A stretch of 63,557 nt of DNA, filler included, from Ministeria vibrans ATCC 50519 (taxonomy: Eukaryota > Protista > Filasterea): the NCBI GenBank assembly GCA_943704425.1. It is 8 parts of 8 records of this genome, joined end to end, with 100 filler letters (N's around TTAATTAATTAA, not from the genome) between each part and the next. Parts side by side here need not be neighbours in the genome. Positions count along the whole stretch, not along the records: positions 24,345 to 31,115 come from CALSCP010001244.1; 7 more parts are not named here. One strand, written 5' to 3'. Position numbers and translations under genes: made by a program. Below are positions 24,345-31,115 of the stretch, one piece after another. A model generated the notes under the pieces. The model did not search any database, was not told the DNA's origin, and worked only from the letters and a program-made list of their open reading frames with translations. The stretch's first letter is position 1; each line of letters begins with the position of its first letter.

Positions 24345-24365
24345 AAAAAAAAAAAAAAAAAAAAA

Positions 24366-24397
<32 letters not shown>

Positions 24398-24412
24398 CAA
24401 CAAACAAACGTA

Positions 24413-25954
<1,542 letters not shown>

Positions 25955-26210: not shown

Positions 26211-28993
26211 ATGGCCGAAACCGCGTCGAGAACCACAGCGCCCGCTCCCCTCGCTGGCGACGCTGAAGACGCTTCGACGCCGCCTCTGTTGGCCACGCGT
26301 GTCAGCAGTGGTCTGAGCGTTACCTTTGGAGATCTACACGTCCGTCCAGCAACCACAGTGGCCGATGGCGACGATGACGACCCAAACACCGACACGCCTT
26401 CTCCAATCGACCCAAAAGTGCTGAGCCGTCTCAAAAGCCGTGCTCCCGACATCCTTCTGGAGCTTGCCGGTGTTCAAAGTGCGATTTCCATTGGTTTGGC
26501 CAACGTTGAGTCGCTCAGACGCGAGGCTGGCGATGAAATGGATGACGACGACGACGACGACGACGACCACAGCGACCACAGCGACCTCAACGATCGCGCT
26601 TTTGATGGATCCGATGACAGCGATGATGGTGCTGACGACAGCGACGGGCAAAGGCGCCAACGGCGCCTCAGAAGACAACGCAGAAGGCGCAGAAGAATAC
26701 GACAGGCCGAATCGGGCGATCGCGAGTTCATTGACGAAGAGATCCGTCTACTTCAGGAAAAACTCTGTCAGCACATTGCCTACCAGTTGATGCTGGTCAA
26801 CGACATGTCGAGACTGCTACGCAAGGGCAAAAAGGACACGTCCAACAATGTGTCGCCCACCGATCCCCGTCTGCCCCAGGACGTCCGCGTCGCTCTTGAA
26901 AAGTCTGCCAAGTACCCAAGTCTTGACAATTGGCTACGTGTCATCAATCTCACCACCACCGAAGTTGAGGTACGCCCTTGACTTGTTACCTTTCGTCGAG
27001 CCCACTCACACTCACTCACTCGCCATGTGTATTCTTTTTCTCCTGTCTCACGCTGCACTCAACAGCAATTCAAGTCAGTTGTGCCCTCGGTGGAAGACCT
27101 GGTGTTTCGTATCGACTCGAGCAATCTCGAAGACGTCATGGTTTATCAGCTTCATTTTGCTGAGTGTACGCGCAATCGCATTGTGACCTCGACAGAGCGC
27201 CTGCGGCTGCTTGCCGAGGAAATGATTGCCTCGCACGCCTCGTCGCACGCCTCGACGCACTCGTCATCTCGCAGTGCAAGCAAGAAGTCCTCGATTCGCA
27301 AAAGTCGCAAGGAAAAGGACACTGCCGCTCGTCTCTCGCTCAGCCCCAACGAACTTCGCAAGCGCATTTCAAAATCCGGTAAGACACTAATATTATTATT
27401 ATTAAAATTTTGATGTTATTATTATTATTATGATTATTATTATTATTATTATCATTGTAATCCTATTATTGTACTTTTTCTTATTATTATTAAAATAATA
27501 ATAATTATTATTAATTTATTCTTTATTTGTTCTCCCGGTACACAGCTCCTCGAATGCGCACCACCCTCCGCTCGCGCCCTGCCCTCCCTGGAGTTGGCAG
27601 TGGTGGTGCCCCCAACGTGTTTCTTCCTCCTAACATGGACGTTGATGGTCACCACTCTCCGGGCGACATGTTGCTCACCCCAAATGTGTCGTTGCCCAAC
27701 GTGAGCGTCTCCATCTCGTCCGTCACCAACCCCCATCACAAGCACCTCACCTTGTCCGACTCAGTTAAGCGCCGGCACTCCGCCACCGCCACTGTCTTCC
27801 AACACCGTCGTGGCGACCTGCCCATTGTTGATCCTCTCATGTGTCCGGACGGTGTCTCGCTCAACCCCGATACGCTCTCGCCCATGACTGTGCTTAACAA
27901 GCGCATCTCACATGCCATCCAGCATCGCTTCAGTGTGCGCACCTTCATGTTGCCCACTCCCTGCGATTTTTGCCACAAAATTGTCATGTTTGGTGTCATT
28001 TGCAAGCACTGCGCCAACAAGTATCACAGTCGATGTGCCGAGCTTGCACCACCCAGTTGCGGTCTTACCAACGAGATGGAGGACGCCTTCAAACGTATCC
28101 TCTACGATGCCGGCGGTTCTTCCAACCCCGCTGTCATCTCTTCCATGATTGGTGCCGCCGTACGCAACACCGGCTCACCTCTCGACGACGATTCCACCCG
28201 CAGTCGCGCTTCCACAGACCCTTCGTCGCCCCCAACGTCTGCCTCCTACTCGGCTGCATCCTGTTTCACGACCGACCCTTCATCAACCTGTAACACGGAC
28301 AACTCTGGTGCACACGGCGCCCCTTCTTCCTCTCTTCCTCTCCCTTCCAATGCTGCTTTTTCCTCTGTTGGTGCTGCACCATACCCTTCGGAGCCCTCGT
28401 CATCCGACAGTGGCACCGGCACTCCATCAACACCTGGCTCCCCAGGTCTTTCCATAGCATCATGCAACGCGGGCGACGCAACTCCTGGCACGCTCGACTC
28501 GGTGCCGGGCAATCTGCGCCTCAAAGCGCTCGCCGCCGCCACCGCGCGGTCCATCAGCTCCATCATTCCCTCTGCGCTTGGAGGGAGTCATGGCAACAAT
28601 TCCACACCCAATTCGCGTGCCAAAACGCCCTTGGTGCGTCTTGTGCCTCGCAGCGCCGGTGTTAACCCACCCACCCTTGCCTTTTCCACTCCCGAAGAGA
28701 ACCAAGTGACGGCACGCGCTCTGCGTCGTCGCTCCCTGTCCAACCCCGTTCTGGTCACTGAGTCGCTTGTCAAGGCGGGTAGTGGGAGTAGCAATGGCAG
28801 TAGCGTCGACGACAGCGTCCTCCATACCACCTCCAAGACGACCGAGGCGGCTCTCTCACTCGAAAATGGCTTCAAACGCTCCTCGTCGCTGGCCGAGTGG
28901 GAGATTCCCTACAATGAACTTGAATTTGGCGAACAGATTGGCGTTGGTCTGACGGGCATCGTCTTCAAGGTATTATTTCCACCGCAGTATTCT

Positions 28994-29054
<61 letters not shown>

Positions 29055-29056
29055 AT

Positions 29057-29099
<43 letters not shown>

Positions 29100-30026
29100 T
29101 TTTTTTCAATTCCTCTTTGTGTGTCTGTGTAGGGCAAGTGGCATGGCGATGTGGCCATCAAACAGATCAATGTGGAGGAGGCAACATTCACCTTTGAGCA
29201 TCTTCTGGGCTTCCGACGTGAGGTGTCGATCTTGCGACGGACGCGACACGAGAACATTGTGCTGTTTATGGGTGCGTGCACCCGGGATCACCTGTGCATT
29301 GTGACCAAGTTCTGCAATGGACCCACACTCTATGCTCATATCCACGTGGAGCGCACTCGGTTCAGCATGGCTCAGTCGGTCGAAGTGATGCGCCAAATTG
29401 CACAGGGCATGGAATATTTGCACGCAAAGAACATCATCCACCGCAACCTCAAGACAAAAAATGTGTTTCTCGAGCAAAATGGCAAGCTCTGCATTGGTGA
29501 CTTTGGACTGGCGACCGTGGGGCTATTCAGCGTGCAAGAGATCAGTACGTTGACGGAGCGCAAGGATAGCGTGCGCCATCTGTCGCCCGAAGTGCTTTCG
29601 CTTGGCGGCGAGGCAACCACGCAGTCCGATGTGTACTCGTACGGTGTCGTCTGTTACGAGTTGATGGCTGGTGTACCAGTCTACGACGGCATTGCTCCCA
29701 CCGACATCATTGAAATGGTCGTACGCCGTCAGGAGCCCAACTTTGATCTCATCCGAAAGGTACCAACCACCACACCCACATCTTTGGCTTCATTCACTTT
29801 TGCCCCCCTTTTTTATTCTTCTTCTTCTTTTTCTCACTCTTCCACTCTATAGGATTGTGGTGCGACGCTCAAAGAGTTTCTCATGAAGTGTCTGTCGTTC
29901 CGTGCCAACGTGCGACCGTCGTTTGAGCGAATTCTAGACCGACTTGAACCGCTCCCCCGCGCGCCGTTCATCAGTCCTACCGATGCCCGCGACAAGCTAC
30001 GTCGTGCTATGACTACCGACTTGTAG
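26211..30026 (+). CDS. KSR: KSR-like (Kinase Suppressor of Ras)/RAF-family pseudokinase: CC-SAM, C1, Ser/Pro-rich region, kinase domain
   Basis: CC-SAM-like VQSAISIGLANVESLR..EEIRLLQEKLCQHIAYQ..YPSLDNWLRVINL. C1 domain HRFS..CDFC..FGVICKHC..HSRC..PSC. Kinase EWEIP..WHGDVAIK, FRREVSILRRTRHENIVLFMGAC, GMEYLHAKNIIHRNLKTKNVF, DFG, SPE; ends RRAMTTDL*. Confidence 0.8.
28994..29100. repeat. (TAT)n microsatellite in a KSR intron; similar AAT/TAT tracts at about 27390-27515, 30045-30123 and 51745-51960
   Basis: Direct inspection. Confidence 0.9.
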
Positions 30027-30077
30027 ACTATACAAACTCATCCTAATAACAATAACAATAACAATTATTACTATTAC

Positions 30078-30123
<46 letters not shown>

Positions 30124-30161: not shown

Positions 30162-30978
30162 TCAGCGGCCGACGCGTTGAGACTGGCCAAAGAACTTGCG
30201 TCGGAGAGCCCTACGCTGGACAAAACCCCAAGCAGCGAGAGACACGACTAGGGCAATGAAGAACAGGCCGGAGGTAGAGGTAGACTGGATGATGATCTTC
30301 TGGGTCGCAGTCAATGTGCTGAAGCCCACCTGAAAAAAATCAAAGAACAAAGTGGTGTCAATAAGGCTTGAGGAGCGTCCCAAGTGAGGAATGGTTGAAT
30401 ATATGTCTCAGTATGCGATTGCTGTGCGTATAAAATGGTAGCGCGCGTACATAATTATATAAACACATAAACATAAACATTGTGTCTGCGGATATGTATA
30501 TTAGCATAATGGTGTGTCGACCTTTTTGTTCGGGGAGAGAGGATATCCGTTGGAGATAAGATAGTTGTAGACGGGGTGCTTGTAGACGCGGTTCTTCAGT
30601 TCCGCCGTGAGCCACAGGTACTCCTGGACGACGTCGAGGTCAAGGAAAGGATAGCGACCCTCCATCGAGTGTGCGCCCGCAATGTACTCCTGCATCGAAG
30701 AAGTCAGAATAAAAAGAGTGAATAAGTGGGGACGACAGATGGAAAAAAAGAAAGAAAAAAAACAAAGTACAAAGGAAAGCAAAGTGAAAGAGCAGGCAAC
30801 ATCATACGAATCACCAACCATAAAAATATCACATAATTTTCTTACCTCCTTGCGCAAATAGTTGCGCTGCGTGCTCATGAAGAAGCTGGGCCAGGGGTAA
30901 ATGGTGGAAAGGTCATCGGGAAACAGTCCGCCAAAGGAACTGTGCGGGTAGAATTTTTTGCCTTGGAACCCATAGTCA
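30162..30978 (-). CDS. Asparagine-synthetase-like protein, C-terminal part with a TM anchor (5' lost at spacer)
   Basis: Spliced: DYGFQG..SSFGGLFPDDLSTIYPWPSFF..YLRKEEYIAGAHSMEGRYPFLDLDVVQEYLWL..KKVGF. The E.RxPFLD and KxGF motifs match the ASNS synthetase domain. A hydrophobic segment GLFFIALVVSLAAWGFV follows. Confidence 0.7.
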
Positions 30979-31050
30979 CTAAAAGAAAATTGAAAAAGAG
31001 AGAGGAAGAGGAGGAGGGGAAAAGAACAAAGTGATAAAAAAAAACCAAAG

Positions 31051-31115
31051 CCCGAGAGCGTGCGTCGCATTGTCGACGCCGGTGTGCCCGTCATGGGCCA
31101 TGTGGGTCTGCTGCC
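31051..31115 (+). other. panB: Orphan coding fragment of ketopantoate hydroxymethyltransferase (PanB/ECM31) at a contig end
   Basis: Translates PESVRRIVDAGVPVMGHVGLLP, matching the PanB G[IV]PVMGH[IV]GL.P motif. Confidence 0.7.

Follow-up and report, generated by a model that had tools for sequence, protein, structure and literature searches.

Is the KSR design, an impaired RAF-like kinase without a Ras-binding domain (RBD), an animal invention? The question is raised by a gene of Ministeria vibrans ATCC 50519 (assembly GCA_943704425.1), found at positions 26211 to 30026 of the window, that is, the whole stretch of 63,557 nucleotides that was analysed, in the part that comes from CALSCP010001244.1. 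KSR has been counted among the gene families restricted to animals (Richter et al. 2018, PMC6040629), the RAF/KSR split has been dated to the animal stem, with a 'MRCA_RAF/KSR' orthologue noted in Ichthyosporea (preprint 2024, 10.1101/2024.10.01.616093), and no RAF candidates were found in choanoflagellates (preprint 2019, bioRxiv 10.1101/767913). The product of the gene is probably a pseudokinase that resembles KSR, from the RAF/KSR branch of the tyrosine kinase-like (TKL) kinases, in a small-genome marine protist, a holozoan outside animals. An earlier note on the same DNA had proposed a KSR-type scaffold on the basis of a series of motifs, and every one of them was found in its place when the sequence was read again.

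An expressed gene with a lesion in the catalytic loop

The reading frame of the gene is interrupted: the coding region is divided into five exons and no single open reading frame (ORF) covers it. Two sequencing runs (X7 and X11) each hold one spliced contig of 3.4-3.5 kb that runs through the gene end to end and omits exactly the four predicted introns, and the spliced pieces of a third run (X12) show three of the four joints; these transcript contigs come from three studies. The exon letters have zero differences in the four runs that were aligned to the gene (X2, a DNA run, together with X7, X11 and X12). The spliced contigs and the lack of exonic differences mean that the gene is expressed and that the five-exon model is correct, the transcript being spliced into a single mRNA. 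The sole difference in any run is a G>A change in intron 1 (position 27055) in X2. The stretch is present in 20 public runs from 11 studies, including a 2011 DNA data set and algal, seawater and marine metagenomes.

Exon 4, which encodes the core of the kinase domain, matches the Pfam family PK_Tyr_Ser-Thr (4e-45), and in the PDB it scores 190 bits with RAF1, 182 with BRAF and 179 with ARAF. The Gly-rich loop, VAIK and DFG are intact, and the alpha-C Glu (FRREV), the Lys and Asn of the LKxxN motif in the catalytic loop and the Arg of the dimer-interface motif RRTRH are kept. The catalytic loop reads HRNLKTKN. In kinases, the HRD Asp serves as the catalytic base, and its change to Asn is a standard kinase-dead substitution. 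A pseudokinase is recognised here by the loss of at least one of the catalytic Lys, the HRD Asp and the DFG Asp, and in this protein the HRD Asp has become Asn; the complete set of VAIK, HRD and DFG that marks a RAF is broken by the same HRN. The codon of this Asn (AAC) is the same in the DNA run and in the three spliced transcript runs, so the lesion reported by the earlier note is no sequencing error.

Relatives of the protein were collected with exon 4 as the query of a full HMMER scan, which covered 1.84 billion representatives. Members of the RAF/KSR family score at least 141 bits and are clearly set apart from the rest, which score at most 128 bits. The closest full-length relatives (HMMER identity) are Capsaspora owczarzaki CAOG_08997 (57%), a Diadema KSR2-like protein (54%) and proteins of Pigoraptor chileana (53%) and Ichthyophonus hoferi (50%); a metagenome fragment of 278 amino acids (aa), P0012, is 58% identical to exon 4. 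In the gene of this fragment, a splice acceptor (tttgcag) stands right before GKWHG (L002 1-60), matching the position of intron 3, the place of intron 4 has no intron and the Asn codon is AAT. A word-index search with the kinase region of the Capsaspora protein returned Pigoraptor and animals only, a search of the same kind with the C1 region of exon 3 returned nothing in the length range searched, and one with the whole Capsaspora protein gave mainly low-complexity words; a full-length protein of the Ministeria gene was among the results of none of them. The protein library also holds a KIAA1549-BRAF fusion of tumour type among the natural proteins (P0047, 813 aa; Pfam KIAA1549 and kinase).

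The catalytic loops of this family read HRDLKSNN in RAFs, HKDLK[ST]KN in animal KSRs and HRNLKTKN in both the Ministeria and the Capsaspora proteins; the other relatives have HRNLKAKN (P0012), HRDLKTKN (Pigoraptor) and ARKLTSKN (Ichthyophonus). DFG is replaced by GFG in Capsaspora and Pigoraptor and by GFS in Ichthyophonus. Every member of the unicellular clade described below has at least one catalytic lesion, and the lesions differ between members, which points to long-standing pseudokinases in which the loss of catalysis looks old and tolerated; as far as sequence motifs can tell, the whole clade looks like a group of pseudokinases. The Ministeria loop ends in TKN, as in animal KSR, where RAF has SNN, and it starts with HRN rather than HKD. 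T108 and K109 of the loop, which are derived relative to the outgroups, are the only clearly derived pair in common with KSR, and few signature columns speak for any grouping. As had been proposed, the route to the pseudokinase state is unlike that of mammals, with HRN rather than VAIR. Invertebrate KSRs retain VAIK and HKD, so there is nothing unusual in VAIK being intact.

The N-terminus resembles the KSR hairpin and SAM start

The domain that defines KSR, the CC-SAM (a helical hairpin leading into a SAM domain), had been recognised at the N-terminus by the earlier note. This claim holds for the hairpin and for the beginning of the SAM. A profile built from five animal KSR CC-SAM regions finds three collinear stretches in exon 1 (aa 85-104, 163-198 and 229-251), which correspond to the three N-terminal motifs of the earlier note, and scores 16.6 bits, a value that none of 3000 shuffles reached (top shuffle 7.9 bits). 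With three unicellular N-termini added, the profile matches exon 1 with 27.9 bits in a single alignment that crosses a 58-aa insert, and hhalign of exon 1 against the KSR CC-SAM profiles gives probabilities of 80% (E = 1.4e-5) and 92% (E = 8e-7). The P and W of the YP...W at the SAM start are invariant in alignment A1. Judged by these profiles, the likeness of exon 1 to the KSR CC-SAM exceeds chance. In our reading, the hairpin and the SAM start are real and the rest of the SAM is presumably encoded by exon 2.

Pfam and PDB searches and folding were done exon by exon or on exon sub-pieces, and the SAM straddles the junction of exons 1 and 2. The AlphaFold2 model of aa 77-253 of exon 1 has a mean pLDDT (predicted local distance difference test score) of 67 and is helical where expected, but it represents an incomplete domain and comes from a 14-row alignment in which MAFFT misplaced helix A. 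Among the relatives, the Capsaspora protein (27.8 bits) and the Ichthyophonus protein (33.6 bits) exceed the gathering score of Pfam SAM_KSR1_N, and animal KSRs match both KSR SAM models of Pfam. The insert, poly-Asp followed by poly-Arg, lies in the loop of the hairpin, and the Pigoraptor protein has an insert at the same point.

A KSR-type C1 domain and no Ras-binding domain

The C1 domain encoded by exon 3 matches Pfam C1_1 (1e-8, 35.3 bits), and the best of the PDB C1 domains is that of KSR1 (1kbe), with 34.1 bits against 26.9 for BRAF, in agreement with the KSR-like C1 described earlier. The same description held that there was no recognisable RBD, and neither Pfam (E <= 1) nor a custom RBD profile run on exons 1-3 finds any. 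The custom profile gave a 9-bit match in exon 5, which falls within kinase subdomain XI and was dismissed as chance. According to Pfam, the Capsaspora, Pigoraptor and Ichthyophonus proteins all have C1 and kinase domains and none has an RBD, whereas RAFs have RBD and C1. A Ser/Thr-rich linker carries the mode-I 14-3-3-type site RSLSNP approximately 55 aa ahead of the kinase domain, and the relatives have an RxxSxP motif at a comparable site (RTSSEP in Capsaspora, RTVSAP in Pigoraptor and RSLSRP in Ichthyophonus). An RRxxT motif, three residues from the C-terminal end, is common to the Ministeria, Capsaspora, Pigoraptor and P0012 proteins. The features of the gene are collected in Table 1.

Table 1 Coding region, exons, introns, domains and motifs of the KSR-like gene, in positions of the window
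Feature	Positions	Strand	Remarks
KSR-like coding region	26211-30026	+	5 exons, ~1098 aa; ATG 26211, stop TAG 30024-30026; read from the sequence and spliced contigs
Exon 1	26211-26969	+	253 aa; disordered N-terminus, helix A, acidic/basic insert, helix B, first SAM helix
Intron 1	26970-27065	+	GT..AG, 96 bp
Exon 2	27066-27378	+	104 aa + 1 nt; presumed rest of SAM, then Ser/basic-rich stretch; splice confirmed
Intron 2	27379-27545	+	GT..AG, 167 bp
Exon 3	27546-28969	+	C1 domain, Ser/Thr/Pro-rich linker, start of kinase domain
Intron 3	28970-29132	+	GT..AG, 163 bp
Exon 4	29133-29759	+	209 aa; kinase domain core
Intron 4	29760-29852	+	GT..AG, 93 bp
Exon 5	29853-30026	+	57 aa + stop; kinase subdomain XI, tail ending RRAMTTDL
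Hairpin helix A	26463-26522	+	aa 85-104, contains SAISIGLANVESLR; profile positions 5-24 and 8-24; helical in AlphaFold2 model, low confidence
N-terminal motif QSAISIGLANVESLR	26475-26519	+	read from the sequence
Asp/Arg insert in hairpin loop	26532-26705	+	58 aa, poly-Asp then poly-Arg; disordered in AlphaFold2 model
Hairpin helix B	26697-26804	+	aa 163-198, contains EEIRLLQEKL; profile positions 22-57, hhalign, pLDDT 75-88
EEIRLLQEKL	26736-26765	+	read from the sequence
SAM-like domain start	26895-26969	+	aa 229-253, contains YPSLDNWLRV; profile positions 64-86, 10.7 bits
YPSLDNWL	26913-26936	+	read from the sequence
Atypical C1 (zinc finger), KSR type (CA3)	27923-28060	+	HRF start, FGV.CK.C core, SCGL after last Cys
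RSLSNP	28730-28747	+	mode-I 14-3-3-type site
Gly-rich loop GVGLTG	28940-28957	+	intact
VAIK	29151-29162	+	ATP-anchoring Lys intact
RRTRH	29235-29249	+	RAF/KSR side-to-side dimer-interface motif; Arg kept
Catalytic loop HRNLKTKN	29439-29462	+	HRN 29439-29447; Asn (AAC 29445-29447) for catalytic Asp
DFG	29499-29507	+	intact

Phylogeny of the RAF/KSR family

The phylogeny of the exon-4 region was reconstructed with IQ-TREE under LG+C20 from 50 rows and 220 columns, with ten other TKL representatives. The RAF/KSR family is separated from the other TKLs with a support of 100/99, and the Ministeria protein is placed inside it, in line with the RAF-like kinase described in the earlier note. Together with Capsaspora, Pigoraptor and Ichthyophonus it forms a unicellular clade (99/96), which bears out the non-animal setting; the metagenome fragment P0012 also belongs to this clade. 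This clade groups with the animal KSRs (98/90), and the RAFs form their own group (95/91). The animal KSR clade (100/99) has a long stem and the unicellular clade falls outside it. A protein of 1424 aa from a Logan contig (P0109), which has a RAF-like kinase with an intact HRDLKSNN and neither an RBD nor a C1 recognised by Pfam, takes a basal position in the RAF clade (93/65) and could represent a RAF-side relative from outside animals.

Several topologies are compatible with these data. In approximately unbiased (AU) tests on 28 taxa (LG+G4), the three possible arrangements lie approximately 3 log-likelihood units apart (p-AU 0.69, 0.20 and 0.42), and the '-fast' and thorough runs of IQ-TREE rank the topologies differently, which indicates that the phylogenetic signal is weak. 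The position of the protein inside RAF/KSR agrees with the earlier note, whereas specific orthology to KSR is not supported, since the AU tests reject no alternative. The unicellular clade may be a KSR orthologue or descend from a single RAF/KSR gene that preceded the duplication; the AU tests reject neither.

Comparison with known proteins

Compared with animal KSR1/KSR2 (e.g. the Diadema KSR2-like protein P0075 and Cordylochernes KSR1, P0149), the Ministeria protein has the same succession of a hairpin leading into a SAM-like start, an atypical C1, a Ser/Thr-rich linker and a RAF-like kinase. It also shares the absence of an RBD, the dimer-interface R.TRH, a catalytic loop ending in [ST]KN followed by NVF, the SCGL after the C1 and an impaired catalytic machinery. 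Unlike animal KSR, it has HRN instead of HKD, the 58-aa Asp/Arg insert in the hairpin and no FxFP; its activation segment ends in the RAF-like SVRHLSPE rather than GWLCYLAPE, its C-terminal tail carries RRxxT where KSR has RSPSHP..LSRSAE, its kinase exon is 41-50% identical, the second half of its SAM is not recognisable and its host is not an animal.

The nearest full-length relative is CAOG_08997 of Capsaspora (P0014), named 'TKL/RAF/RAF protein kinase' in UniProt, whose kinase exon is 53% identical by BLASTP, 57% by HMMER and 58% in the tree alignment. Both proteins have the same architecture, the loop HRNLKTKN, near-identical C1 flanks (NKRISH..HRFS..SCGLT.EMED), RxxSxP before the kinase and the RRxxT tail. 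The Capsaspora protein differs by a GFG in place of DFG, by an insert inside the SAM and not in the hairpin loop, and by an N-terminus that passes Pfam SAM_KSR1_N. With animal RAF (RAF1/BRAF; Oscarella, Hypsibius, Clavelina) the Ministeria protein shares the top raw scores of the kinase exon, the order of a C1 and a linker with an RSxSxP 14-3-3 site, the dimer-interface motif and the HR with which the catalytic loop begins. It differs from RAF in having neither RBD nor catalytic Asp, in TKN instead of SNN, in its KSR-type C1 and in the hairpin/SAM that replaces the RBD.

Proposed function and alternative explanations

By analogy with animal KSR, the protein may act in a non-catalytic manner. 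The conserved Gly-rich loop, VAIK and DFG, with HRN in place of HRD, suggest that it would bind nucleotide without phosphorylating, and the RRTRH face that it could dimerise side to side. It might hold a mitogen-activated protein kinase kinase (MAP2K) of the MEK type for a partner kinase, or activate the partner kinase allosterically. Of the ability of KSR to bind MEK and to transactivate RAF through dimerisation, the one sign visible in the sequence is the RRTRH motif. Binding of 14-3-3 at RSLpSNP, and perhaps also at the C-terminal RRxxT, would gate this activity, and the C1 together with the hairpin-SAM region would target the protein to the membrane.

Several observations speak against a KSR-like pseudokinase. 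Pfam SAM_KSR1_N (PF20406) and SAM_KSR1 (PF13543) do not match exons 1, 2 or their sub-pieces, and exon 2 alone gives no significant match for the second half of the SAM with the CC-SAM profiles or hhalign, its best local piece being collinear; the check with Pfam that the earlier note had suggested was negative for the exons taken singly. Foldseek finds nothing in the PDB at E <= 0.001 with the exon-1 model. No KSR is found among the best 60 PDB matches of the kinase exon, whose raw score is nearer to RAF1/BRAF. In an AU test, the arrangement of animal KSR and RAF together, with the unicellular clade outside, was not rejected and had a slightly better score (p 0.57), and the tests quoted above do not reject the unicellular clade outside RAF plus KSR (p 0.20) or with RAF (p 0.42). 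The FxFP motif for ERK docking (CA4), present in 6 of the 7 animal KSRs checked, is absent from the Ministeria, Capsaspora, Pigoraptor and Ichthyophonus proteins. RAF was not found outside animals, and all the named RAF and KSR representatives that were looked up belong to animals. The last two observations also leave without support the idea that a RAF-KSR allosteric module predates animals. Finally, MEK binding, dimerisation, ATP binding and the absence of activity are predictions made from sequence motifs and from what is known of animal KSR.

Several other explanations may account for this protein. One possibility, which we regard as unlikely, is that it is a working mitogen-activated protein kinase kinase kinase (MAP3K), the functional equivalent of RAF, in which the Asn in HRD would be tolerated or compensated and MEK would be phosphorylated after recruitment through the C1 and the hairpin. 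All the nucleotide-binding motifs (Gly-rich loop, VAIK, alpha-C Glu, Lys and Asn of LKxxN, DFG) are indeed intact, RAF1 and BRAF give the kinase exon its top scores and the end of the activation segment is that of a RAF and not that of animal KSR; moreover, no separate RAF was found in non-animals, an earlier study having seen no candidates in choanoflagellates (bioRxiv 10.1101/767913), which means that a kinase of some kind has to activate MEK. Yet, other holozoan MAP3K families (MLK, STE11-type) could do so (bioRxiv 10.1101/2024.10.01.616093). Besides, the Asp-to-Asn change in HRD is kinase-dead in general kinase biochemistry, and the further lesions of the sister proteins (GFG, ARK/GFS) fit a relaxed selection on catalysis.

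Alternatively, the KSR likeness of the N-terminus could be that of a chance or convergent coiled coil, borne by a RAF-family kinase that lost its RBD and has no special tie to KSR. The failure of both Pfam SAM models on the exons and the p-value of 0.42 for the grouping with RAF would agree with it, as would the insignificant pairwise phmmer comparisons of exons 1 and 2 with the N-termini of Capsaspora, Pigoraptor and Ichthyophonus. There is likewise no PDB match by sequence or fold: the PDB sequence search with exons 1 and 2 gave low-complexity noise only, and the ESM Atlas has no usable match for exon 1. Nevertheless, we find this scenario quite improbable, as three collinear profile matches that no shuffle equalled, the 27.9-bit alignment and the hhalign E-value of 8e-7 all contradict it. 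The relatives pass the gathering score of SAM_KSR1_N, the invariant YP...W is present, the C1 is nearer to KSR1, the TKN is common to KSR and neither this protein nor the three relatives show any sign of an RBD. That this part of the window is of animal origin or an animal contaminant, and the gene a divergent animal KSR, is hardly credible. KSR is otherwise known from animals, but the 99/96 grouping with Capsaspora, Pigoraptor and Ichthyophonus lies outside animal KSR and its HKD, GWLCYLAPE and FxFP signatures, the runs that carry the stretch are small, with 47-150 Mb of contigs, and seawater and algal metagenomes are among them, and the gene is a compact one whose four introns are short and which lies 256 bp from the start codon of its neighbour. 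A KSR-like pseudokinase of a non-animal holozoan seems the likely interpretation.

Gene surroundings

Upstream of the KSR-like gene, a CDC73/parafibromin gene lies on the - strand (24345-25954; Pfam CDC73_N in two exon pieces), so that the two genes are transcribed divergently. The ATG of CDC73 (25954) is separated by 256 bp from that of the KSR-like gene, whose mRNA contig extends back to approximately 26002, which gives the two genes a very short bidirectional promoter region in common. The CDC73 region contains a run of N (an assembly gap) beside a (CT)57 microsatellite and a 30-bp repeat (approximately 25190-25406 and 25407-25520). Three (TAT/ATT)n microsatellites make up most of introns 2 and 3 (27391-27513 and 28993-29101) or lie just past the stop codon (30064-30123), and the X2 DNA contigs end at each of them. 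Downstream, a piece of ORF on the - strand (30501-31094) matches Asn_synthase weakly, with an E-value of 0.007 that falls short of the cut-off, and probably represents an exon of an adjacent gene extending beyond this part.

Implications for the origin of KSR and RAF

The earlier note had presented this protein as a candidate for an undescribed system. No paper was found that describes a protein of KSR architecture outside animals, but public data already include a precomputed match of Pfam SAM_KSR1_N to the Capsaspora protein, so the point is partly visible in databases. An expressed pseudokinase of KSR architecture, common to this protist, filastereans and an ichthyosporean, supports the view that KSR-like pseudokinases, or at least the KSR-type design, predate animals. 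It raises the question of what such a pseudokinase does where no RAF is known. The unicellular clade also supplies several naturally occurring forms of kinase inactivation (HRN, GFG, ARK/GFS). Capsaspora is transfectable and carries a member of the clade, which opens the origin of the Ras-RAF-MEK-ERK switch to experiment.

A more far-reaching scenario, which we put forward tentatively and hold to be rather less probable than its contrary, is that the KSR-type form (hairpin-SAM, C1, impaired RAF-like kinase and no RBD) was ancestral to the RAF/KSR family in Holozoa and is the sole form in the unicellular relatives. RAF would then be an animal novelty, born from the duplication of a KSR-like gene, and the pseudokinase of the protist would work with MEK without RAF. 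If this were true, the RBD and the full catalysis of RAF would have arisen in animals, and the 'scaffold' would have preceded the 'kinase'.

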